Source: Paramicrosporidium saccamoebae KSL3 | Taxonomy: Eukaryota > Fungi > Cryptomycota | Length of the DNA: 32,000 nt | Direction of reading: 5' to 3' | Assembly (NCBI GenBank): GCA_002794465.1 | Contig: MTSL01000178.1 | Location: 22,015-54,014, forward strand | In this document: piece after piece, positions 3,039 to 21,147 of the stretch | Layout: every line of letters starts with the position of its first letter | Numbering within the stretch: the first letter of the stretch is position 1 | Notes under the pieces: generated by a model | What the model was told of the DNA's origin: nothing | The model's database searches: none | Seen by the model: only the letters and a program-made list of their open reading frames with translations | Made by a program: the position numbers and the translations under genes

Positions 3039-3863
3039 TTATTTACGATGCTTTGATTTCTTGACGTTGGAGGAATCAATACAACGATCAGTCCAGTTGC
3101 TCTTCTTTAGTTTGACTGGTCGACTACCAATATACTTTCCTACTCATCATCACCTCATGAACCAAACATACCATTCATTTCCCGGATTGCTGCAAGAAAG
3201 TCCTGTGGCTCCTTGAATCCAACAAATCCATAGCCTTTGGACTTGTTCGACTTTCGGTCCCGTATAATTCGGTATTTGGTCAGCGAGCCGAATCGGGAAA
3301 AGGCCTGTTGCAACATCATGTCCGTCACCTCTGGTCCCAAATCGCCCACAAATATCCGGAAATCATCTACAGATAAGACGACAGGAGGGACAAATACTTG
3401 GATCCCAGTCAGCAAGAGTTGGATCCTGCCATACCTCGCCAGCAGCCGCCCTCAAAGTGTGAGCCGGTGCGGTGGGTGGCTTTGCCGAGCAAACGGTAGC
3501 TGCTGTGGTTGTGTCCTTGGTCAAGTCCTTGGCTGGATCTTTCACTGAAGGTGTCATAATAAATGCAGGCCGTTTAAGTGTGTTGGTCTTTGCGGTACTG
3601 CTTCCAGGAATGGAGCCCACCACTGTACTGCCGGTAGAGCCTATTACCGTACGACTGACTTGAGGAATAGACCCGATTGTTGCACCACTAGTACGGGAAA
3701 TAGAGCCGGTTGTTGCGCCACTAGTATGGGGAACAGAACCGATGGTTGTGCCACTGGCACGGGGAACGGCGCCCACTACTGTGCTACTGACTTGTACTTT
3801 GCGCGGTGCCTGTCCAATAGGCAACTGACCGATGGGCTGTTGTTTCGATGGTCTCTGCTCCAT
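3039..3863 (-). CDS. RBM42: RBM42-like RRM splicing factor (U4/U6.U5 tri-snRNP associated), 253 aa, 3 exons (3863-3398, 3366-3172, 3139-3039)
   Basis: Spliced product reads [33 protein letters not shown]...[10 protein letters not shown]...[20 protein letters not shown], which is diagnostic of RBM42. Introns 3397-3367 (31 nt) and 3171-3140 (32 nt). Start codon is less certain. Confidence 0.9.
3601..3794 (-). repeat. 33-nt (11-aa) coding tandem repeat in the RBM42 N-terminus
   Basis: Four full units (3649-3681, 3682-3714, 3715-3747, 3748-3780) plus partial flanking units, encoding [44 protein letters not shown]. Confidence 0.85.
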
Positions 3864-3881
3864 TCACCCCAGTCATTCTGC

Positions 3882-6152
3882 ATGAACAGTCTTTTATGGC
3901 GGAGCATTCCCAGACTGCATTTCACAGCATCTTGTAAACTTTACTTTACGGAATACTCTATATTGCACTCCACAGAATACTCTACTTTATATTTCACAAG
4001 ATATTCCCGGCTGCACTCGACACCGCACTCCCGACTGCACTCGATATCGTACTCCCGACTGCAGTCCGCAAGGTATTACAGCCAATGTGTCCACGATGAA
4101 CGGATACGAAACATTGGTATCATTGCTCATATTGATGCTGGAAAGACCACAACCACTGAACGTATGCTCTTTTACTCGGGTCAAACGCGTCGAATTGGCG
4201 AGGTGGATCGGGGAGATACTGTCATGGATTATCTCCCTGAAGAGCGTGCCCGTGGAATCACCATCACTGCCGCCGCCATCACTTTTCCGTGGAAGGATCA
4301 TCGGATTAATTTGATCGACACACCCGGCCATGTGGATTTCGGGATGGAAGTGGAACGCAGTTTGCGGGTTCTGGACGGCACAGTGACAATTTTGGATGGT
4401 GCAGCGGGGGTACAGGCACAGACTCGGACGGTATGGCGACAGGCTGGACGGTATGGCGTACCAAGAATTGTATATGTCAATAAGATGGACAAGATGGGTG
4501 CAGATTATGAACGAACAGTAAAGGAAATTGCAGAAAAGTTGGGTGATCTACAGCCTGTCTGTGTGCAGATGCCGATTATGAGGGAGGATCGTATTTGGGG
4601 GGTGGTTGATTTAATTGGAAAGAAAACATTGCATTGGAGCGATCCACAAGGACGAGAGGTTATCGAGACTGATTGGGACAATGACGCTGACGCTAGGTGG
4701 GCGCCTGGGAGGATTAAATTGATGGAGCAGCTCGCTGATCTGGACGATGCGTTTCTAGAAAAGTATCTGGATGATCCCCATTTGGTCACTGGCAAAGACT
4801 TGGAATCTGCAATCCGGCGACTGACTTTGCAGACAAAGATTGCACCCGTTCTCTGTGGCTCCTCATTTACAAACATTGGAGTCCAGCCCGTTCTGGATGC
4901 GATTGTAAAGTATCTTCCCAGCCCATCGGAACGGCCTTTGCCAAAGGTGAATCAAGATGTGGTTTGGAAAGACGATCGTCTGCTTGCATTGGCGTTCAAG
5001 GTAGTCCATGATGAACAACGGGGATTATTGGTGTTTGTCCGAGTGTATGCTGGAGTTCTGTCCACTCGGACTATGTTGAGGAATGGAAGTAGGAACATTC
5101 GAGAGCGGGCTACCAAAGTCATGACAATCCATGCTAACCAATTTGAAGAGTGCGAGGCTGTCTCTGCAGGAAATGTTGCCGTGTTGCTTGGACTCAAAAA
5201 TACCCGCACCGGCGACACAATCACCGCCGAAAACGAATGCAAGAACCTTAATGTACAGCTCGCTGGAATTGACGTTCCCCAGCCAGTGTTTTCTTGTGCA
5301 GTGGAGGCGGAATCCACGAGCGACGATTCTCGACTGGAGGAGGCGCTAAAGATTATTGAACTGGAGGATCCATCGGTTCGAGTCACCAAGGACCATGAGA
5401 CGGGACAGAAGCAGCTTTCCGGAATGGGCGAGCTGCATTTGGAGATTGTTGGAAAGCGCATCACTAGAGATTTGAAGGCACGAGCATCGTTTGGACAGAT
5501 CCAGATTGCCTACAAAGAGACTTTTGGAAAGAGAACTGCGGAGACTATCCAGGGGGAAGTGGATAAGGATATGGGAGGGAGACGATTTGTTGGGGGATTG
5601 GAGTATACTGTGGAGAGCACCGACGAGCTGATTAATAAGATTGAGCCTAGTGATTGCATGCCGGCAATCCAAGAGGGATTTGAATCAGCCCTTCAAGACG
5701 GACCCACTGCCTCTTTTCCATTGATTGGCGTACGAATTAAAGTTTTACGTGTCGACTGGACGGAGGGTGTTTCTTCACTAGATGCCCTCCGATATGTGGC
5801 GTACACTTTACTGCGAAAATGGTGCGTTAATCAGTCATCGAGACTGGTGGAGCCCATTATGGGTGTGGAACTGACTGTCCCCGACAAATACCTTGGGACC
5901 GTTCTGGCTGACATTCATGCGGGCCGACGGGGAAATGTCACTGAAACGAATACATCGGAAGAAGGCGATCACACAGTCTGGGCCGAGGTGCCGCTGGCAT
6001 CAATGCTTGGTTATGCAACTAGTCTGCGATCCAAGACTGGCGGGACTGCGTCATTCTCCATGCAACCCCTGACGTATCGAACAATGTCGCAAGACGAAGA
6101 ATCGCGCATTCTTTCCTCCTTGGGCGTCATCCAGCCGATCAAAGACGCATAA
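3882..6152 (+). CDS. MEF2: Mitochondrial ribosome-releasing factor 2 / EF-G2mt, 756 aa, intronless
   Basis: Motifs [75 protein letters not shown] and [12 protein letters not shown]. The GxVDxGDT segment is typical of the EF-G2mt (GFM2/Mef2) clade. First ATG is at 3882; the track start at 3660 is TTG. Confidence 0.9.
3915..4082 (+). repeat. 7 x 24-nt (8-aa) tandem repeat within the presumed EF-G2mt mitochondrial presequence
   Basis: [56 protein letters not shown], with a period visible at DNA level (e.g. ctgcactcgacaccgcactcccga / ctgcactcgatatcgtactcccga). Confidence 0.9.
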
Positions 6153-9542: not shown

Positions 9543-10760
9543 ATGTCAGCATCACTTTTGGGAGGAAACAGCGGCAACTCGATTAACATCCGTCGCGACG
9601 TGCAGGATGCCTTTTATCGCTACAAAATGCCGCGATTACAGAGTAAAATTGAGGGAAAGGGCAACGGAATCAAGACGGTGGTGCCGAATATGGTGGACAT
9701 TGGAAAGGCGTTGGGTCGACCAGCTGCGTACATTACAAAGTTCTTTGGAGCCGAGTTGGGCGCATTATCGACATGCGACGAAAAGGCAGCCAAATACATT
9801 ATCAACGGGGTGCATGATGCAGAAAAGCTGCAGACGCTGTTGGATGTGTTCATTGCCAAGTTTGTGCTATGTCCCAACTGCGACAACCCCGAGACGGTTC
9901 TGAGTGTCAGCAAAAAGGACGGCACTGTGTTCCGTACATGTCAGGCGTGTGGTCATCGTGCCACCGTTGATATCCTGCACAAACTGTGTTCCTACATCCG
10001 GGCTAATCCGCCCCCCAAGCCTGCAAAGAAGACACAGGCCAAGGATCGTGCCGACGAGGCGTCAGAAATGACCGGAATGGGAAGCACTCCCACCGGCGAT
10101 CAAATCGATGGAATGATTGTCCCAGAAGACTTTGATGATACTCTTCACGATGCTCCCACCAATGTGGATGAGGACGATTGGGATGAGGAGACGGCGGCTG
10201 CTTTGCGGGCTGATGAACTCTCCCGATTGAGTGAAAATGTGCGTCAGAAATTGTCGTTGGAGGAGACGGGTGAGGAGGGACTGAAGAAGGAAGAGGTAAA
10301 GGTGAGCAGGACGGACGAGTTAATGGATGCGCTTGATCGTTTCGGCGACTGGCTCAGCACCCAACCCGACAATGCTGCCATCCTGAATGAGGTGGAGGAG
10401 CGCAATATTCGGGCTGACAAGGCGGTAGTGGTGTTGGTGCAAGTTTTATTTGCCGACGACTTTATCCGTACCCTCAAGACGCGCATGTCCCTTTTGCAAA
10501 AGTTGGTGTCGAGCGAAAAGGAACAAAAGGCTCTATTGGGGGCCGTGGAGCGTCTCGTGGGTGTTGTCAATCCCTCCTTACTCGCCAAAACTTCCATGAT
10601 CCTTCAGACCCTCTACAGCAGTGATCTGCTCGATGAAGACGTTCTAGTGGAATGGCAGGGTAAGTTGTCTAAAAAGTATGTTTCCAAAGAAGTTGCTCTA
10701 CAAGTGCGGTCCCAGGCCCAACCATTCTTCGATTGGTTGGATACTGCCTCTTCAGATTAA
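9543..10760 (+). CDS. TIF5: Translation initiation factor eIF5, 405 aa
   Basis: Motifs INIRRDVQDAFYRYKMP, EGKGNGIKTV, zinc ligands CPNCDNPET/CQACG, and a W2 domain ending PFFDWL. Confidence 0.95.
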   Translation: MSASLLGGNSGNSINIRRDVQDAFYRYKMPRLQSKIEGKGNGIKTVVPNMVDIGKALGRPAAYITKFFGAELGALSTCDEKAAKYIINGVHDAEKLQTLLDVFIAKFVLCPNCDNPETVLSVSKKDGTVFRTCQACGHRATVDILHKLCSYIRANPPPKPAKKTQAKDRADEASEMTGMGSTPTGDQIDGMIVPEDFDDTLHDAPTNVDEDDWDEETAAALRADELSRLSENVRQKLSLEETGEEGLKKEEVKVSRTDELMDALDRFGDWLSTQPDNAAILNEVEERNIRADKAVVVLVQVLFADDFIRTLKTRMSLLQKLVSSEKEQKALLGAVERLVGVVNPSLLAKTSMILQTLYSSDLLDEDVLVEWQGKLSKKYVSKEVALQVRSQAQPFFDWLDTASSD

Positions 10761-11016: not shown

Positions 11017-14000
11017 TCACAGACCGTGAAAGGATTGTCGTTCTATGGTGGAGTACTGATTGGAATCTTTCCCAACTCGCCAGTAATAATCAGCACACTC
11101 GTGACGCCCCAACGAATCCACAAACTCCTCATCGTGCGTAATGACAATTAGTTGAAAGTTGCCCTGTTGACCACGCATCTTGATAATATCAACAAGCGAG
11201 CTGGCCAACGATTCAATGTTGTCGCGATCCAGATTGGTGGTGGGCTCATCCAATGCAATCACTCCGCAATGTTGTCCAAATGTCTCAGCCAACGCCAATC
11301 GGATAATCAGCGACGCCAATACGCGCTGTCCCGCACTGCTGCGACCTCGCATGTCCAGTTCCGTGTCACCCTTCAACATCACCACCCGGTAATTATATGA
11401 ACGTCCTCCCACTCCCTCTTGATCCGCCCGGATCTCAATCGTATCAATATCGGCGCCTTGGTATGTTGAAGTCCAAATCTCCCGGATAATTCGGTTCACT
11501 TCGCCCATCTTGTGGGCATGGAACTGCATGATCGCCTGGTCCAGTGCCTTGGAATACTTTTCCAAATCTTCAATGGCCAACGTTGTGGCATTGAAGCGCA
11601 CAAATTGATCCCGATAATTTTCCTCGATGGAGCGGTAATCAGTGGACAGTTCATTCTGTAAACGCTCGTTTTGATCCTGCAGCTGTCGTATTTCACCAAA
11701 GATCCCCGAGCGCTCTCCCAACAACTCGCAGTGGCGCAATTCATGGCGCTGTAGACTGCTGTTGGCTGATTGGCAATCAAACGTCCCCAACTTTGAAGTG
11801 AGCTCTGTCATTTGCATTTTTGTCGTCGTCAGTCTTTTTTCCAGTTCGCGGTACTTTAAGTTGTCTCGAATGTTGCGTTCCTCAACAACCGCCTCGCTAG
11901 TTGCCTTAGAGAAGACGGCTATCTGTTCATTAATCTTGTCCAATTCACTCTGCTGTTCCGTCAAAAGAGCTTGAATTTGCTCCTTGTCATGGCGAAGCAT
12001 CTCTAACATATCTACACTACAGCTATCCTCCATCTTTTCGACTTCGTTGTGGATGGAGCAATATTCGCGGTTTGACTGCTCTACTTTTATCCACCTGGCA
12101 TTTGCATCAGCTTCTTTGACAGAGTTTTCATTTTGCAGCTTGTTCAATCTATCTTGATGTACACTCAAATCCAATGTCCAACGCTCCAATTCGGCCTCGG
12201 TCAGAGCAATTTCCTCCCTAGCGGTCTGTATCGATTGTTCCAGTTCACTCTTGGTTTGCTCCCAACGAATCGACTCGGATTGCTTCAACTGAATCTTCAT
12301 TATTTGCTCTTTGATATCACGAAATCTCCCCTCTCTGGATTGCAAATCGGCCCGTCGGCATTTCATCTCGTTGCTAATGTGCTCCATTTCTTTCGCAATA
12401 CTCTGGCTCTCCCGTTGCAATTCACTCTGCCGTTCTTGGATCCCATCAATATCACCACTTACGCCCCCGATCCGCATCTCATTCTCCAAACTGTCCACAT
12501 CCGACTGCAAGAACCCAATTTCCCTCTGAATCTTTCCCATCTCTTCAGTACGCTTCTTCAAAGATGACGTCTTTTTCTCCTCTAACACTGCAGTAGACAG
12601 CTCCGATGCAATATCGTCAAAAGCAGCCTGGGCATGATCCTTTCCGTTCTCAAGAATCTTTAACTCGTTTGCAAGTTCAGGCAATTCCACCAGCTTGAGA
12701 CGGTCAACGTCGTCACTGGTGCTTCTCAGTCCTTTCAGCTCGGCCAATTTCGCTTCCAAGTTGCGCTTTCTATTTTCAATTTCAAGAGTCTTTTCGGGAA
12801 TGTTGGATATGAAGCTAGCCAACTAAACATTAAAATCAAGTTAGCGAGCTTACCTTTCGCGTAAACAGCTCTTCGTCCATTTTAGAATCAAATCCTCGTT
12901 CACACAAGGGACAATTCTTACCTTTCAAGAATGTGGAATTAAAGGCTTCATAAGTGGCCTTTGATGCAAGCGAGAGCGTAATCTCGGAACACGCCAAATT
13001 ATAGTCCGCCTCTAACTCCGCCAAATGCATTCCAAAATCTTCCCTTCCACAAACTTGCTCCAGTTTGCGCATTTTTTCATTCAACTCTGTCTCTTTCCGA
13101 GAATATAGCGCCTGCGCGTGTTCATGTTTAGATCGTTCAAATGAACTGGTGTGCAATAATTTTTCATTTCTCTCTTGAATGGCTTTCAGGGCCTGCTCCT
13201 TTTCCCTCCAGATCCGTTCACCCTCGCACTCGGCATCTTCGATGGCCACTGCGCTCTCTGCAAACACTTCCAATTCGGATTTAATATCATTGAAAATTTT
13301 GTGAACCATCTCATTCTTTCGCTCTAGCTCACCCTTCTTCAATTGTAACTTGGCACGGACTTGGGAAAATTTCGTGGAGGAGGCGATCTGATTGTTAATC
13401 TCTTGGACTTTTTCGTCTACCTCTTTCCGCTTTTGGGCAAGGACTTCCAGACGCTCCTCATAATTGGCACCCAAGAAGAGCGTACGGCTTGAATTTAGCA
13501 CGCCTTCATCCTCCAACAAGCGTAATTGCAGCTCATCCAGCTGATCCCTGGCCGAAGACACGGTGCTAATTTGATCGATTGTAGTGGCAAGCTTCATCTG
13601 GTGTTCCTCCATAGATCGCTTCTTCATTCGCTTGGTCTCTGTTAGCGATGATACCTTGGTGCCCGTGTGCTGGATCTTTTGCCTCAGGGCGTCTTCTTCT
13701 TCCCTAATTTCCTTTTGCAGCAGGCTCCACGAATCCTTCATGGTCTGCATCTTTTCACTTGCAAGGGTAGATGATTGCACAAGACTGTCTCCCATGGGAA
13801 TTTCAAGCTCTGAACACAGTGATGCCAGCAGAACAGTCCTTTTCGCCTTTTTGTCGGTCAAACGAGACAGTTCCGCTTCCATAATACCGGCTTCTGTCAA
13901 TTTTGTTGATAGAGCCCGACTCTGGTCCGAAATGGCGGCCTCAATATGTTGACGCTTCTTCTGCATCTCTGCGAGTCCGCTTTCACTAGTCCTTGTTCGC

Positions 14001-14935
14001 TGCAAGTGCTGGTCCAGGAGCACCTGCAGGATTTCGTCATTCTCAGACATAATACATAGGCCCTGCAAGAGATCATTCTGGCTCTGTTCGGTAACTTTCA
14101 TGTCATGCTGCATTCTTTCCAGCTCCGCATGAAGATCACTTAGTCGCTTCAGGTCATCTGTCAGCTTTTCAATAGCCGCATTGACCAGCGTCATCTGTGC
14201 CTCTATTGCTTCAATCCTCGCTCTACCCTCTTCCCTCCTCACCAGATTCCTTTCAACCTCCAACCGCACCTTTCCTGCCTTTTCTTTGTCGCTCCGCAGG
14301 AAATCGAGCTTTTGCTGCTCCAATTTCAGTTCGGCCGCCAGATCCTTCCTTAACCCTTTCAATGTATCAAGCGCCTTAGTATAGCGGGTGGCAGCAAAAA
14401 TGTCGTCGAATTTCTTCTTTAGGATGCTGGGTTCGGAGAGCGGCCAGAAGGACTCTTCCTGATGACAAAAGAGTACATTCTCGAGGACCGCACGGGATAC
14501 GCCCAACTGCAACGGTACTTCTGCATCCATCTCGGCGCATCGACTAGAGATGCTCACCTGCTCGCCAGTCTGCAAGTCTGTCGTCGCCAAAACGCTCTCT
14601 AATGTTTTCTGTTCCAATTTCGTCTTCTTCTGGGTGGATTGCATGGAACGAGTGCATACCATGGTCTGGCCTCGCACATTCTTAAACTTGAGCTTGATCT
14701 GACCTTTCACCTCTGCCTCCCGGGATACCTTGGGGTCATGCACAAATGCGCCTCCCTTTGCATTAGGCGGCAAATCACCAGTGGTTGCGTATTTGAGACA
14801 TTCAATAATCGTCGTCTTGCCCGCGCCATTTTGTCCCACGATAATGGTGAGGGGTGTGTAGAATTCAATGACACTCTCATTGTAGGGTGAGAAGGACCTG
14901 ATGCCACGAATGAGGAGTTTGTCGAAAGAGGACAT
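11017..14935 (-). CDS. RAD50: DNA repair ATPase Rad50, about 1295 aa, 2 exons (14935-12854, 12822-11017); alternative ATG at 14941
   Basis: MSSFDKLLIRGIRSF, Walker A IVGQNGAGKTTIIECLKYATTG, FCHQEES.WPLSEP, coiled coils, zinc hook CPLCERGF, MRGRSSAGQ and Walker B IALDEPTTNLD. 31-nt intron 12853-12823 (GTAAGC...GCTAAC...TTTAG). Confidence 0.96.
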
Positions 14936-14939
14936 GCCC

Positions 14940-15439
14940 ATGTCGGAGTCACCTGGTGGTCTATACGGGGAGGCGTCTGGCGATTTACCCAATGAGCCAT
15001 CCAGTGGTTTACCTAGTGAGCCATCTAATGAAACGTCCAACAACCTACCTAGAGAATCACCCAACACCTCACTCAACACGCCACTCCACACACCACCACC
15101 CACGAATGAACGCGTGGTCATTTGGTTTAGGGCGACGGGAAATGCACCGATACTGAAGCAGAGCAAGTTTAAAATTTCAGCAGAACAGCGGTTTGTGGCA
15201 GTGGTCGAATTTTTAAGGAGACAACTTCGTTTTGGGGAAAAGGACCCATTAGTACAATGAGGGTTAGTGTGTCATGCTGTAGTTTTTATATTTGAACAGT
15301 GCATTCTCGCCTGCTCCAGACGAGCCCGTGTCCAATCTCTATTCAGTATAGTCTCTCCCTGTCTATCGCTAAACACTAGTGCTTTAATGTGGATGGGATG
15401 TTGATAGTAAATTACAGCGTAACTGCAGCATGGGGATAA
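14940..15439 (+). CDS. ATG12: Ubiquitin-like autophagy modifier Atg12, about 144 aa, 3 exons (14940-15251, 15283-15345, 15380-15439); alternative ATG at 14934
   Basis: Spliced product reads VVIWFRATGNAPILKQSKFKIS...FLRRQL...|FLYLNSAFSPAPDEPVSNLYS|CFNVDGMLIVNYSVTAAWG*, ending in the conjugating Gly. Introns 15252-15282 (31 nt) and 15346-15379 (34 nt). Confidence 0.92.
14979..15098 (+). repeat. 12/24-nt coding repeats in the Atg12 N-terminus
   Basis: ggcgatttacccaatgagccatcc / agtggtttacctagtgagccatct / aacaacctacctagagaatcaccc, then aacacctcactc / aacacgccactc (GDLPNEPS, SGLPSEPS, NNLPRESP, NTSL, NTPL). Confidence 0.7.
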
Positions 15440-15473
15440 ATTGTATAAACTGTAGCTAGACTTGCATTGCATG

Positions 15474-17067
15474 TTATTTCAGTAACGAAGCCACTACGGA
15501 ACGGACATTCATTTTCCGCAAATCAGTATAAGTCTGTCCCACACCGACAAACAGAATGGGCGCATTGGCAATATAAGTCATGGAGATGGCAGCGCCAACC
15601 TTGTCGTCGATAGTGTCAAACTTTGTCAGCAGGATTCCGTCAATGCGAGCTACCTCTCCGCTGGCATAATCACAAAGGGCCCCGTTGAATTTCTTCAGCT
15701 GATCGACAGCTTCGTTGCCAACAAGCGCCTCGCCCACAAAAATGAGCTTATGGGGACGATTGGTATAGACGAGCTTGGCAAGAGCGGCCATCAAAGGGGC
15801 ATTTCCTTGCATCCGACCGGCCGTATCAATCATGACAACATCAAATCCCTCAGTCTTGGCATAGGCAATCGCCTCCTTGGAGATTGCCGCAGCATCCTTC
15901 CCATAGCCGCGCTCATAAAGCTGGAGTTGAGCGGGATCCCGTCCAACCGACAGATTGCGAACATGTGTTCTGAGCTGTTCCACGGCGCCGGAGCGGAATG
16001 TATCGCCTGCAACAATGAGAATGCGAAGTTTGTTTTGCAACAGCCAGAAGCACACCTTTGAGAGATTTGTTGACTTTCCCACTCCATTGACACCAATAAA
16101 CGCCATCACATAGGGTCGAGTCGTTCTTTTGATGTCTTCTAGGAGATCAGCTCCAGCCTTGGGCATCAGGATCCGTGAAACGGCAGTCTCAGTAGCATCG
16201 CGCACCATTTGTGCTACGGTGCGAAAGGTCCCCGTCTTCTTGCCAATCAGACTATCTGCAACCGAACTGCAAATCATCTCGGCGACTTCGGCCGCCACGT
16301 TCTTTTGTGTAAGATGTTCTTTCATATGGGCCTGTGCTGTTTGAAGATCGGTCCTCGTAATCTCCTTTTGTCCAGTGATATTGTCAAAGTACCTCCAGAT
16401 GCCAGTCTTGGGTTCAGCTTCCTTTGGTTCTTCTTCAAAATCCCATTCCATAAGCTCGGAATAGTCTTTTCCGTCTCCGACCACAGAAGATGGTGTGGGT
16501 GTGAGACATTCAGAGGAGACACCTTTATCCGAGCTCAAGTCAAGATCATTCAGCGCCTCCTTGCTGACTTTGTCTCCCCAGTCGCGTTTCTGTTTTCCCT
16601 TCTTGCCCTCCCCAGCAGCAAGCACCTTGGTCTCGGGAGTGCGGGTTTTTGTACGTCGCTCTTCCCGAGACTTTTCCTCCACTTTGCTACTAATCAGCCG
16701 GAACGGTCCGTCAAATTCATCAATGGACTGATAGTCTGTGATACGGTCCCGGTATGTCCGCGCCCAATACATTTTGACTTGCTCCAAAAGTGTGGGAACA
16801 TAGGTCAGTGGGAGTATTTTTTGATATGCAGCCTAGAGAGATGAATGCATGCTGGTAGCAAAGTACCAAGAACGCCAGTCCGAGCTCATGATTAATTGTC
16901 CAGTGTGTCTCTAGCGACCCCACAATCATCGACGTCCCAGCAAGCGACGTCTCAATAATATTCTCTCTCACCACTCGTGCTATCAATGCCTCATGCTCCT
17001 CCTTTAGCGGCTTCAAAGTCCATAAAACTAGACCACCAGTGGTCAGTACGACAAACAAGTCAAGCAT
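15474..17067 (-). CDS. SRP101: Signal recognition particle receptor alpha subunit, 519 aa, 2 exons (17067-16867, 16832-15474)
   Basis: Longin N-terminus MLDLFVVLTTGGLVLW. NG-domain motifs GVNGVGKSTNLSK, DTFRSGAVEQL, DTAGRMQ and TKFDTIDDKVGA. 34-nt intron 16866-16833. Confidence 0.95.
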
Positions 17068-17083
17068 CGCCCTGGACACTGTT

Positions 17084-18214
17084 ATGGAGCATCTAACAAG
17101 TATGGCAGCGTCGGCCAGTGAGGAACTTGTTACATTGGATGCAGCATCCTTAGGCCCACCAGCGGTGGTACTGGCCACGGCAGGCTATGACCACACGATA
17201 CGTTTCTGGGATGTCGTCCGCAGTTCCTGCATTGGCACCCTGCAGCATAACGAGTCACAGGCCAATTGCATGGCTCTGACACGGGACAAGCTGCGGCTGG
17301 CAGTGGGCGGGAATCCTGCCATTAGACTCTTTGACACTGTTGCAGCCACACAACTGACTGAGGAGGGCGTCGTCAACACCACCGCCAATGTCCCTCCCTT
17401 GCACGTCTTTGAGGGCCACATTGGAAACGTCGTGGCCCTTGGCTTCCATACTGATGGCGATTGGCTTTGGAGCGCTAGTGAGGATGGGACTGTCCGAATA
17501 TGGGACATTACCAGTCCCGAATATTTGTGCCAGCGCGAAATCAGTCTCGGATGCACTATTACAAGCGCAGCCATATCACCCTCACAAACTGAATTGTATG
17601 TGGCCGATCAGAACGGACGGGTGAGAGTATGGGATCTTGCCTCCAACACATCGCTGTTGGAGCAGTATGTGGAGGAGGGGGTCCAGCTCCGTTGCATTAG
17701 TCTTTCCCAAGATGGAAATCACATGGCATGCATTGATCATGCGGGACGACTCCATCTTTGGCGGATAGCCGTCACCACAGCGGAAGACGAAGATGCCACT
17801 TTGCTTTCTTTGCACCATTTATGCACGGTGCAGGCACACGAACAATATGGTCTTAAATGTCTATTCAGTCCTGATTCAAGTTTCATCCTCACCACCTCGT
17901 CGGATTCTACTGCGCGATTGTGGAGGATCACTGATCCCCGTCTGCTCACTGGATCGAATGGCAGTCTCAATAGGAGTTTCACAGAGCTCTCCGAGCCGCA
18001 AGTCTTGCTAGAATTGGCCCAGACATTTGAAGGACACAGCAAGTGGGTATGGGACTGCGCCTTTTCGGCCGACTCGGCCTACGTTGTGACGACGTCATCC
18101 GACAACACAGCCCGTCTATGGGACGTAAGCACCGCAGAGACTATCGCAATCTATGCTGGCCACAGCAAAGCAGTCACATGTCTTGTTCTCAACGACCTCC
18201 CCCATCTCCAATAA
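17084..18214 (+). CDS. LST8: TOR complex subunit LST8 (WD40), 376 aa; alternative ATG at 17102
   Basis: VVLATAGYDHTIRFW...QH.ESQ.N, FEGHIGNV.ALGF, SEDGTVRIWD, and GHSKWVWDCAFSADSAYVVTTSSD.TARLW. Confidence 0.93.
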   Translation: MEHLTSMAASASEELVTLDAASLGPPAVVLATAGYDHTIRFWDVVRSSCIGTLQHNESQANCMALTRDKLRLAVGGNPAIRLFDTVAATQLTEEGVVNTTANVPPLHVFEGHIGNVVALGFHTDGDWLWSASEDGTVRIWDITSPEYLCQREISLGCTITSAAISPSQTELYVADQNGRVRVWDLASNTSLLEQYVEEGVQLRCISLSQDGNHMACIDHAGRLHLWRIAVTTAEDEDATLLSLHHLCTVQAHEQYGLKCLFSPDSSFILTTSSDSTARLWRITDPRLLTGSNGSLNRSFTELSEPQVLLELAQTFEGHSKWVWDCAFSADSAYVVTTSSDNTARLWDVSTAETIAIYAGHSKAVTCLVLNDLPHLQ

Positions 18215-18587: not shown

Positions 18588-21147
18588 ATGCAGGCAGTAC
18601 CACTCAAGAAAAGCCTTCCCGTCTCATTCAAGGCACTTGGTACCTATATCGAGACTGGACATCACCAGGACCCGGAAGAGTATGAGGTGGAGCTGAAGAA
18701 GCTCGATGACTTGAGACAGGCAGCCATCAACGCAGTGCCCAGCGCAGAAGGTCTGGCTCGACTTGCCGAGTATCACGGACAGCTCTCAAAGCTCTCCACG
18801 CGGTTTCCAATAGGGGAGGATGGGATAAAGATTGCCTTTTCATGGTTCAACTTTGCAGGCAAGGAAAAGAAGCCAAGTATGTGACTTTTTAATTTTTCTC
18901 ACACTACATTATAGTTGCCTCGCATGAACTGAAATTTGAAGAAGCCTCCATCATAGTAAATATTGGGGCCACGTATAGCCAAATGGCTGCTCAGGAGAGC
19001 TATGGCTCCGTTGATGGTCTCAAACGTGCATATAACAACTTTTTGAATGCTGCGGGTGCCTTTGAATCGGCGGGTCGTTGTGCTTCGGGCGCGCCGATCC
19101 CTACCACTGACCTTTGCGAGTCGTCCATTTCCTGTCTTGTCGCCATGATGCTTGCTCAAGCACAAGAATGTTTCGTACAAAAGGCGATTCTCGAAAAAGC
19201 TGTCAAGGACACGACTCTGGCCAAACTGGCCATGTCCACGTCTGCGTTTTTCGAGTCTGCAAAATCCCACGTTTCCAAGAACAGTGCAACCGGAATGTTT
19301 GCAAATTATGTCGACTGGCTGGCCGGTAAAGCGGCTCTATATCGGGGCATTGCTCATTACCGCAAATCGACCGAGTGTCTCGTGGCATCGCAATATGGAA
19401 GAGAGATTGTCAAGTTGCAAGAAGCCGACGAAGCAGTAAGGGATGCCAAAGAATTGATCAAAAGACTTCCATCAGAGTTGAGTAACCAAATTACCGCCCT
19501 TGCTGTGTCGGTTACAAAGAATCTTGAACGCGCGCTAAAAGATAACTCGCTGATTTACAATGATCCCCTTCCTGCTCGAGGTGCATGGGGCGATTGTGGT
19601 GCTGCAGTTATTGTCAAAGCCACAGCTTTTCCTGATGCAGCAATCAGCTCCTATACAACGGCGCCGTGTCTATTTGAACGACTGCCAGTCATTCATGTCA
19701 GTAGAATACTGAATTCGCTTGCTGTGACCCGTGACCAAATTGTGTCTGAGCAACTTGTTCGTCTAGATGCCGCTGTATCCACTCTCGAGGGCGCGTTTAC
19801 TAAGCATCAGCTTCCAGGTGTTGTTCATTCTGTGCTCTCTCCAGAGGGACTTCCAGAGGCTTTGATCGCACAATCAGATGAGATTCGTGAAAAAGGCGGA
19901 TTTACTGCATTAGAAGAGATTCGCGAAAAGGTGCAAAATTTGCGTACAGACTGCTCAAAGATTGTCAATGCAACCACTTGCACGCTTGATGACGAAGAGG
20001 CACAGGACAACAACAACCGACAACGATATGGTCCCCAATGGACACGGGCGCTTTCATCGCAGCTCAACAAGATGCTTCGTGGTCGATTAGACGAGCTAAG
20101 GATGACCTTGAAACAGGGCGAGGCTGCCGATGCCAGTTTCATTGAGATATATAATGAGCATATTCCCTCAATCATCAGTCTATCTCTTTCAAAGGAAGAT
20201 TTGGAAGATGCTGTTCCTGCTTCAAGCTCCCGTAACCTGGGCATACCGGCAGCGGTGGTTGGGGAAATTACCGCAGCTATTGAACGGAAAGATCATCTCA
20301 TTGGATGTAGAAACAGTCTTGGAGAAGAACTGGGAAGTGCCATTGGGTCTGTAGATATTGTTGCGCGTGCTTTAGAGTTGGATGGAGAATCCGACATCGA
20401 AGCAGTGATCAGCAAAGAACTAAGGGATGCAGCAGAGTCCATCGGACCCAAACTAGACCGACTTGACAGTGACATTGCCGAATATCTGCGATTTTTGGAG
20501 CGCCTGATGGCAGATTTCTACGAAAGCTGTCCCAAGATCCAAACGTCAATGGATGAGCGCGGAGTTGCCTTCCAGCGGCTAAATGAAGCATACAATGCCT
20601 ACTTGGCCTTGATGCCCCAACTTGGTGCCGGCCAGCAGTTTTACACCGATTTACTGGAACAGCTACGCTCGCTTCAACAGGTCTGTGCCGATTTTGCACA
20701 AAATCGGCTTGGGGAGCTTCAAGAAATGTCCAGGTAATTTAGAAGCCGATATATTTACTGTGTAGGAATCTGGACAATGCTGCTGCTTCCCACTACGGAC
20801 AACAATCGGCTCCCATGTATGGTCAGCCGCCGGCGTTTGGTGGACAACCTTTGCCAATGTACAGTCAGCAACCCTCAGCTGCACAATACCCAACTCAACA
20901 GCCGCCTGTACCTGGTGCATGGAACCCTTCCATCCCGGTACGATATGGTGCACCACAGAACGTGTCGCCGGCATCTTATGGTGCGCCTGATCAAGGGAAT
21001 CCCTACCCAGTAGTATATCCATCAGGAGCACATCAACCAGGAGCATATCCGCCTGGAACGTACCCACCGGGAGCATACCCACCTGGAGCATATCCGCCTA
21101 ACAACGGACCCTTTGGTTATCAGAACCCGTATTATCGACCACAATAA
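18588..21147 (+). CDS. BRO1: BRO1-domain ESCRT adaptor (ALIX/Bro1/PalA family) with V domain and proline-rich tail, about 829 aa, 3 exons (18588-18876, 18915-20733, 20766-21147)
   Basis: AVPLKKS, LDDLRQ, I.F.W, FEEASIIVNIGATYSQMA, MLAQAQECF, A..DN.LIY and the V-domain RYGPQWTR..S; Pro/Tyr/Gln-rich tail. Introns 18877-18914 (38 nt) and 20734-20765 (32 nt). The Bro1 versus PalA/Rim20 assignment is not resolved, and the 5' end may have an extra exon. Confidence 0.88.
21025..21099 (+). repeat. 5 x 15-nt coding repeat (GAHQP/GAYPP/GTYPP/GAYPP/GAYPP) in the BRO1 tail
   Basis: ggagcacatcaacca ggagcatatccgcct ggaacgtacccaccg ggagcatacccacct ggagcatatccgcct. Confidence 0.85.

Follow-up and report, generated by a model that had tools for sequence, protein, structure and literature searches.

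RAD50 and ATG12 of Paramicrosporidium saccamoebae: a conserved divergent gene pair that has probably lost its intergenic spacer

How closely can two divergently transcribed genes be packed, and where are their promoters to be found once their start codons meet? The question is raised by a locus of Paramicrosporidium saccamoebae KSL3, a member of the Rozellomycota that lives as an intranuclear parasite of amoebae and whose genome report cites MTSL00000000 (PMC5701793). In a stretch of 32,000 nucleotides (nt) of contig MTSL01000178.1 (hereafter "the window"; the position on the record equals the window position + 22014), the DNA-repair gene RAD50 on the minus strand and the autophagy gene ATG12 on the plus strand stand head to head, and AUGs of both lie in a single palindrome. 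The window has a G+C content of about 50%, and its genes are densely arranged on both strands. The comparison with related lineages indicates that this contact is a derived state of one lineage, in which the ancestral ATG12 start codon appears to have been lost.

The junction sequence (14931-14944, GACATGCCCATGTC) contains two CATG tetramers, at 14933-14936 and 14939-14942, within the palindrome GACATG-CC-CATGTC. Since every ATG preceded by C entails an ATG on the opposite strand, the plus-strand ATGs at 14934 and 14940 are paired with minus-strand ATGs at 14935 and 14941; both candidate start-codon pairs are thus contained in the palindrome, as the original prediction of start codons sharing CATG had stated. 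By itself, the palindrome is ordinary: CATGNNCATG occurs a single time within the window, and perfect inverted repeats of the 6+2+6 type are present at chance level (7 observed versus 7.8 expected). The unusual feature is the absence of any other AUG for ATG12. Between 14940 and the ubiquitin-like (Ubl) domain there is indeed no in-frame ATG, but the claim that there is none elsewhere ahead of the domain has to be amended: two further in-frame plus-strand ATGs, at 14901 and 14910, lie inside the coding sequence (CDS) of RAD50, in a frame that opens at 14886 after the TAG at 14883-14885, so that a possible 5' extension of the ATG12 open reading frame (ORF) comprises 14901-14939 on the plus strand with in-frame ATGs at 14901, 14910 and 14934. 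All plus-strand AUGs from 14869 to 14991 fall in the ATG12 frame. If RAD50 starts at 14935 and ATG12 at 14940, the two CDSs are separated by 4 nt (GCCC); the other AUG pairings lead to CDS overlaps of 2, 8 or up to 41 nt. The assertion that the genes overlap or lie at most 4 nt apart therefore holds if an AUG is used, but not for a start at the ACG codon 15033-15035 discussed below, which leaves a spacer of 97 nt.

On the RAD50 side, structure-based and clade-wide alignments place the conserved start at 14935. The residues from Met-14935 onward align one to one with residue 1 onward of the RAD50 proteins of yeast (9bi4), human (9q9h) and Chaetomium (5da9) (E=1.5e-76), in agreement with the earlier identification of a conserved Rad50 N-terminus, and the RAD50 proteins of all related lineages begin with MSS(I/V)(D/E)KLL. 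An alternative start at 14941, two codons upstream, would give MGMSSF; the minus frame across the junction (MGMSSFDKLLIRGIRSF) reads M-G-M-S-S-F-D-K-L-L-I-R-G-I-R-S-F. RAD50 exon 1 (12854-14935, minus strand) extends from the conserved Met (MSSFDKLLIRGIRSF) to a GTAAGC donor and is followed by a 31-nt intron (12823-12853, minus strand; GTAAGC..CTAAC..TTTAG) and by exon 2 including the stop codon (11017-12822, minus strand), which begins after the CPLC zinc hook and contains LDEPTTNLD. The spliced product comprises 1296 residues with CPLC in mid-protein and ..ALDEPTTNLD.. near the C-terminus; its N-terminal lobe contains the Walker A motif GQNGAGKTT and matches Pfam AAA_23 (E=1.3e-38), and the annotated product matches SbcC_Walker_B.

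On the plus strand, the sequence encodes what by all its features is a complete ATG12 gene of three exons, previously unannotated. In the preferred model, exon 1 (14940-15251) encodes a 57-residue low-complexity tail (MSESPGG...PTNE) and the first part of the Ubl domain; it is followed by intron B of 31 nt (15252-15282, GTACAA..TGTAG), the position of which is kept in the relatives, by exon 2 (15283-15345, FLYLNSAFSPAPDEPVSNLYS), by intron C of 34 nt (15346-15379, GTATAG..CTAAAC..CTAG) and by exon 3 (15380-15439), which ends with ..VTAAWG and TAA. The spliced product matches the Pfam family APG12 (PF04110) over its full length (1-87/87, 104 bits against a cut-off of 22.8, E=5e-30) and aligns end to end with Arabidopsis ATG12b (1wz3) and human ATG12 (4gdk). 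Its C-terminus (..TAAWG directly before the TAA) exposes the glycine without processing; four relatives share this ending, and L009 (see below) has SPAWG. The introns of the clade measure 31-47 nt and carry branch sites resembling CTAAC; L006 lacks the ATG12 intron that follows NLY(S/R). An exhaustive enumeration of AUG-initiated ATG12 models, with or without an intron, yielded none that starts downstream of 14940. Combining an ATG with one GT..AG intron of 25-150 nt gave 112 formal models, all starting at or before 14940; an upstream-exon model was rejected, as none of the 112 combined the typical donor of this genome with its CTAAC branch geometry.

The gene is missing from the public record: the NCBI gene models contain no plus-strand gene between RAD50 and SR-alpha, and a search of the ATG12 product against 5.8 billion proteins returned no P. 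saccamoebae protein (the best match, with 56% identity, was from Dispira), wherefore we regard ATG12 as unannotated. An exact look-up of the unspliced 119-residue ATG12 ORF likewise found no record of that sequence, and a literature search for Paramicrosporidium in combination with ATG12 or autophagy found nothing relevant. At its 3' end, ATG12 stands tail to tail with SR-alpha (stop at 15474, minus strand), the stop codons being 34 nt apart (15440-15473) compared with about 107 nt in L004; at this distance the 3' untranslated regions of the two genes must either overlap or be extremely short.

Is the contact between the two genes an old arrangement? Metagenome and Logan contigs retrieved with the RAD50 N-terminus (70-93% identical; L002/L003, L004, L005, L006 and L007) and a further relative from a JGI scan (L009) provided five related lineages with seven loci. 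Over the first 220 RAD50 residues the relatives are 79-91% identical to P. saccamoebae, with which they form one clade; L004 and L002 are sisters of P. saccamoebae, and L009 is the earliest branch. ATG12 is located upstream of RAD50 on the opposite strand in all of these loci, the APG12 domain is matched in full by the spliced products of four of them (L002, L004, L006 and L009), and the gene order of L004 (BRO1, LST8, SR-alpha, ATG12, RAD50, eIF5, ETF-QO) corresponds to that of the window. The divergent pair is thus kept in six lineages with 0-291 nt between the start codons: the spacing amounts to 196 nt in L002, 171 nt in L004, 291 nt in L006, 164 nt in L007 and 35 nt in L009. The synteny check proposed with the original prediction accordingly recovered the same pair in all five lineages, but the zero gap in P. 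saccamoebae only. Among 80 other RAD50 loci from metagenomes, ATG12 was nearby in one (L009). The linkage of RAD50 and ATG12 is therefore a clade-specific synteny and no widespread coupling of functions; the suggestion that the junction couples DNA repair to autophagy found no support, near-zero gaps also being present between unrelated neighbours in the window (SR-alpha/LST8).

The relatives further reveal what the ATG12 5' end looked like. Their exon 1, of 9 codons in L009 and 21-27 codons in the others, ends with ..DK, and a phase-1 intron of 37-47 nt separates it from the Ubl exon; five of five relatives possess this intron, but it is lost in P. saccamoebae, where the frame is continuous. 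When L002 exon 1 was slid without gaps over the window, the best local match (47.9% identity) was obtained with the L002 ATG placed at 15033, and matches as good as this occurred at 6e-5 of the positions on both window strands. The codon 15033-15035 (plus strand) is ACG, followed by TCC, in place of the ATG TCC and ATG TCT of the sisters; counted from 15033, the tail comprises 25 codons, compared with 24-27 in L002, L004 and L006, 21 or 26 in L007, and 9 in L009. From the placement of exon 1, the ACG TCC and the tail length together, we conclude that the ancestral ATG12 start codon was lost via a T-to-C change at 15034; the orthologous ACG is a candidate non-AUG start. Because the relatives keep 35-291 nt between the genes, the ancestral AUG has been lost and the remaining in-frame AUGs (14940, 14934, 14910 and 14901) are situated at or inside the start of RAD50, the zero gap is best read from these sequences as the derived state of one lineage and not as an ancestral design.

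The former spacer of 97 nt (14936-15032) is now open in both the ATG12 and the RAD50 frame and contains a CCAAT box and a 24-nt duplication. A DNA alignment of the spacers detected no significant similarity between the window and any relative, nor among the relatives except for L002 and L004. Exactly one CCAAT box is found in five of the six RAD50-ATG12 spacers (window, L002, L004, L006 and L009; chance per spacer 0.04-0.46), and the boxes of the window (14988-14992, plus strand) and of L006 form part of ATTGGG(T)AAAT, 53-58 nt ahead of the RAD50 ATG; the box may represent a shared promoter element of these spacers. In P. saccamoebae, the box would now be read as Pro-Asn in the ATG12 tail. The duplication is in frame (14982-15005/15006-15029; DLPNEPSS / GLPSEPSN), identical at 19 of 24 positions by eye, and directly precedes the ACG at 15033; a 12-nt CA-rich repeat at 15058-15096 (3.2 copies according to TRF) is located in the ancestral ATG12 tail. 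Over the 165 nt from 14943 to 15107, three of the six reading frames (+0, +1 and -1) are free of stop codons. In L009 (935-1013), where the ATG12 tail has 9 residues and its ATG lies 35 nt from that of RAD50, the open frame extends upstream into the RAD50 CDS, where it reaches an in-frame AUG at 1013 (MTESPGSG.., antisense to LLIRGIRS). The resemblance of MSESPGG in the window to this L009 peptide was dismissed as coincidence, the L009 peptide being dictated by the conserved RAD50 LLIRGIRSF codons.

How, then, may P. saccamoebae translate its ATG12? We favour, with modest confidence, a start at 14940 or 14934, in which case the transcription start sites would be crossed and the promoters would lie within coding sequence. 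The divergent pair would be ancestral to the Paramicrosporidium clade, normally with a spacer of 35-291 nt, and three changes would have occurred in P. saccamoebae: the spacer was reduced to 97 nt, the pre-Ubl intron was lost and the ATG12 start was mutated to ACG (15033). With the frame still open upstream, the next in-frame AUGs are those sharing CATG with the RAD50 start; translated from 14940 (or 14934), ATG12 would gain about 31-33 presumably disordered residues and carry the N-terminus (M)SESPGGLYGEASGDLPNEPSSGLPSEPSNE.. in place of the (M)SNNLPR expected from the ACG. The ATG12 transcription start site would then be situated inside the first codons of RAD50, within 14869-14939, and that of RAD50 inside the first ~19 codons of ATG12, within 14942-14999, because an out-of-frame minus-strand AUG is present at 15000; if scanning is assumed, the out-of-frame minus-strand AUGs at 15000 and 15024 cap the RAD50 leader at 58-64 nt, depending on the start used. 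The leaders of both mRNAs would be short and their 5' ends complementary, with promoter, 5' untranslated region and coding sequence of both genes combined in a single stretch of about 100 bp. From the AUG positions we infer the same pair of options that the original prediction had named, namely promoters and leaders embedded in the partner gene or leaderless mRNAs. A more extreme version, in which GACATG-CC-CATGTC itself would act as shared initiator and start-codon context for two nearly leaderless mRNAs with crossed start sites in a region of about 100 bp, appears doubtful; it draws on a likeness to the CCC/GGG motif found just before the AUG in microsporidia. Inspection by eye of 14 start codons for a shared upstream motif or Kozak context revealed nothing convincing (purine at -3 in about half, GGG/CCC within 10 nt in 5 of 14).

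Several points weigh against a start of ATG12 at the junction. Both transcription start sites and the ATG12 initiating codon are predictions from AUG positions. The open frame over 14943-15032 arises by chance in 23% of shuffles. A codon-usage classifier, which was trained on 21.6 kb of CDS from the window to tell sense from wobble-aligned antisense and is 98% correct on ordinary 55-codon windows, scores 14943-15032 as mildly plus-strand coding, but had to be rejected as uninformative on the low-complexity tail (plus -4.7, minus +1.4), given that it called the certainly coding 15033-15107 minus-like; the low complexity of the tail accounts for such odd codon-usage scores. The CCAAT box at 14988-14992 suggests that the 97 nt may still be an ordinary promoter that fires downstream of 14940, which would produce mRNAs without upstream AUGs. 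The corrected gene models of Encephalitozoon cuniculi, considered below, are a warning against accepting overlaps from sequence alone.

Owing to the chance-level open frame and the failure of the classifier, sequence statistics do not separate the favoured start from an initiation of ATG12 at ACG 15033-15035 or another near-cognate codon, in which case the CDSs would be kept apart by the 97 nt, acting as an ordinary if very short bidirectional promoter. This reading is unlikely in our estimation, although the ACG lies exactly at the orthologous start and yields a tail of the length found in the sisters, a CCAAT box is contained in the 97 nt as in four of the five relatives' spacers, and L009 demonstrates that a 35-nt spacer can suffice in the clade. 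It is opposed by two out-of-frame plus-strand AUGs at 15028 and 14992, situated 5 and 41 nt ahead of the ACG, which a scanning ribosome would meet first unless the leader measured no more than 4 nt, and by the context of the codon (G at -3, T at +4); moreover, ACG is usually a weak initiator. Of the two scenarios that had been named as fatal to the original prediction, this downstream non-AUG start is consequently a candidate with ACG 15033 as its concrete form, whereas a distant upstream exon is not supported, exon 1 of the relatives being located at the same spot. A start at 14901 or 14910 would, on the contrary, let the two CDSs truly overlap in antisense, by 26-41 nt and in the region where RAD50 is most conserved. 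Both codons share the ATG12 frame, which is uninterrupted from the TAG at 14883-14885 onward, and they belong to the series of plus-strand AUGs from 14869 to 14991 that all fall in the ATG12 frame; nevertheless, we hold this option to be highly unlikely: both have C at -3, compared with G for 14934, both ATGs stem from RAD50 codon pairs (CTC-ATT and GGC-ATC), the lack of an out-of-frame AUG in 24 codons is by our own estimate an event of about 50% chance, and the extra residues MPRMRSLSKED have no counterpart in the relatives.

The two remaining explanations deny one of the genes or its annotated limits. ATG12 could be no longer translated after a recent loss of its start codon, as an incipient pseudogene, or the C at 15034 could be unrepresentative (heterozygous or an error), the abutting AUGs being in either case a functionless coincidence. 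The mutated ancestral ATG would fit, as would the absence of ATG12 from an annotation that used RNA evidence, and a heterozygous position is conceivable in an organism reported to be diploid with bi-allelic single-nucleotide polymorphisms (PMC5701793). We nonetheless judge this improbable: the ATG12 ORF is intact, as are its C-terminal Gly and the two introns with their branch sites; its Ubl domain has diverged no further than those of the sister lineages, is among them the closest to Arabidopsis ATG12b, and thus shows no sign of decay. The silence of the annotation says little, because the pipeline made other clear errors at the locus (a fusion of LST8 and a BRO1-domain gene into one model, and an SR-alpha model without its first exon). 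According to the public gene model, finally, RAD50 extends over window positions 11017-15121 on the minus strand and begins with MTTRSF, i.e. with a 62-codon N-terminal extension (14942-15121), and the plus-strand ORF is no gene. The minus frame is open from 15166, the ATG at 15121 stands in good context (A at -3), only 1.6% of shuffles leave both the ATG12 and the RAD50 frame open over 14943-15107, and over the whole segment the codon classifier slightly prefers the minus frame. However, the 62 residues have no homologue and the matches to the relatives cover only MSS.. onward; all solved RAD50 structures and all relatives begin at the Met of MSS.., and in L004 a stop codon directly precedes this ATG. 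Antisense open frames of at least 62 codons in the same phase cover 47% of the genuine CDS in the window, hence an open frame is no evidence of coding here, and the plus strand encodes a full, spliced, clade-conserved ATG12. We consider the annotated extension excluded for practical purposes and judge it to be an artefact of the open antisense frame.

Compared with known systems, the locus is an extreme case among the head-to-head pairs of compacted genomes and thus of a known kind. It resembles the compacted microsporidia (E. cuniculi, Antonospora locustae) in belonging to a related lineage (Rozellomycota/Microsporidia), in having spacers of tens of nt and in the frequent mis-annotation of starts that lets CDSs appear to overlap. 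In E. cuniculi, 5' untranslated regions of less than 7 nt and transcripts initiating in upstream genes have been described, and of 129 annotated head-to-head CDS overlaps only 9 survived the correction of start codons (PMC2803860, PMC3629993). In contrast, the correction of the RAD50 start in P. saccamoebae still leaves a gap of no more than 4 nt; furthermore, P. saccamoebae retains many short introns and a fuller gene set, and its overlapping transcription is a prediction from where its start codons and out-of-frame upstream AUGs lie. The conserved divergent pair with one short shared region and CCAAT in five of six spacers is likewise reminiscent of the bidirectional promoters of yeast and mammals, which are often CCAAT-rich. 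These classically have some 100-1000 bp between outward-pointing transcription start sites, whereas the start sites here would be crossed, each lying in the CDS of the partner, if AUG initiation holds.

As in start-codon turnover with N-terminal extension, an ATG has been replaced by ACG at the orthologous site, the frame is open to an upstream AUG, and the residues added would be of low complexity and placed ahead of a dispensable disordered tail. Unlike the usual case, the replacement AUG would be part of a palindrome holding the start codon of the neighbour, so that the turnover would have removed the whole intergenic spacer. Non-AUG initiation at ACG or UUG is known from fungi, e.g. from yeast ALA1 and GRS1, where it adds isoforms upstream of the normal AUG. 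The ACG of P. saccamoebae is similar in standing exactly where the AUG used to be; it differs in that it would be the sole start and located behind out-of-frame AUGs.

That this genome tolerates near-zero junctions follows from a second head-to-head pair some 2 kb away, SR-alpha/LST8 (17065-17086), in which the SR-alpha Met (17067, minus strand) and the LST8 ATG (17084, plus strand) are only 16 nt apart, compared with 82 nt in L004. The Met of the N-terminal SRX exon of SR-alpha (MLDLFVVLTTGGLVLW; MLDLF.., 17067) aligns with residue 1 of human SR-alpha, and the same start is found in L004; an out-of-frame AUG at 17092, 25 nt upstream, caps the SR-alpha leader at no more than 24 nt. Out-of-frame upstream AUGs occur 25-31 nt before the conserved starts of SR-alpha in the window and of ATG12 in L002 and L009, which argues for short leaders. 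In the SR-alpha region (16720-17178 and 15474-16787), the public model starts at 16772 and lacks the SRX exon; the LST8-like WD40 gene (17084-18214) and the BRO1-domain ORF (18983-20737) form one public model of more than 1140 residues and are separate ORFs on L004. In the annotation alone, a further divergent pair is recorded at 3863-3896, an RRM protein on the minus strand and an EF-G-like GTPase on the plus strand, with 32 nt between the annotated starts and out-of-frame AUGs 13-14 nt upstream of each of them. The eIF5 ORF is located at 9543-10760 and has a single exact occurrence in the public collection, on this contig of assembly GCA_002794465.1. The annotation drew on RNA evidence, and a stranded poly(A) RNA-seq library of spores exists (PMC5701793).

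For the public record, the locus brings a correction: an intact ATG12 exists unannotated in P. saccamoebae, and the annotated RAD50 carries a spurious extension of 62 residues. Surveys of autophagy genes in early-diverging fungi and in the relatives of microsporidia would score ATG12 as absent. For the family, the gene pair offers a natural series of compaction, with spacers of 291, 196, 171, 164, 35 and ~0 nt in six lineages, the final step of which is linked to a start codon altered by a single T-to-C change. Provided that ATG12 uses the upstream AUG, the junction would be a compact test case for RNA polymerase II promoters and 5' leaders lying wholly within coding sequence; and should the palindrome act as a shared initiator, P. 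saccamoebae would possess an RNA polymerase II promoter pair without any non-coding DNA, and a part of a protein N-terminus recruited from a former promoter.

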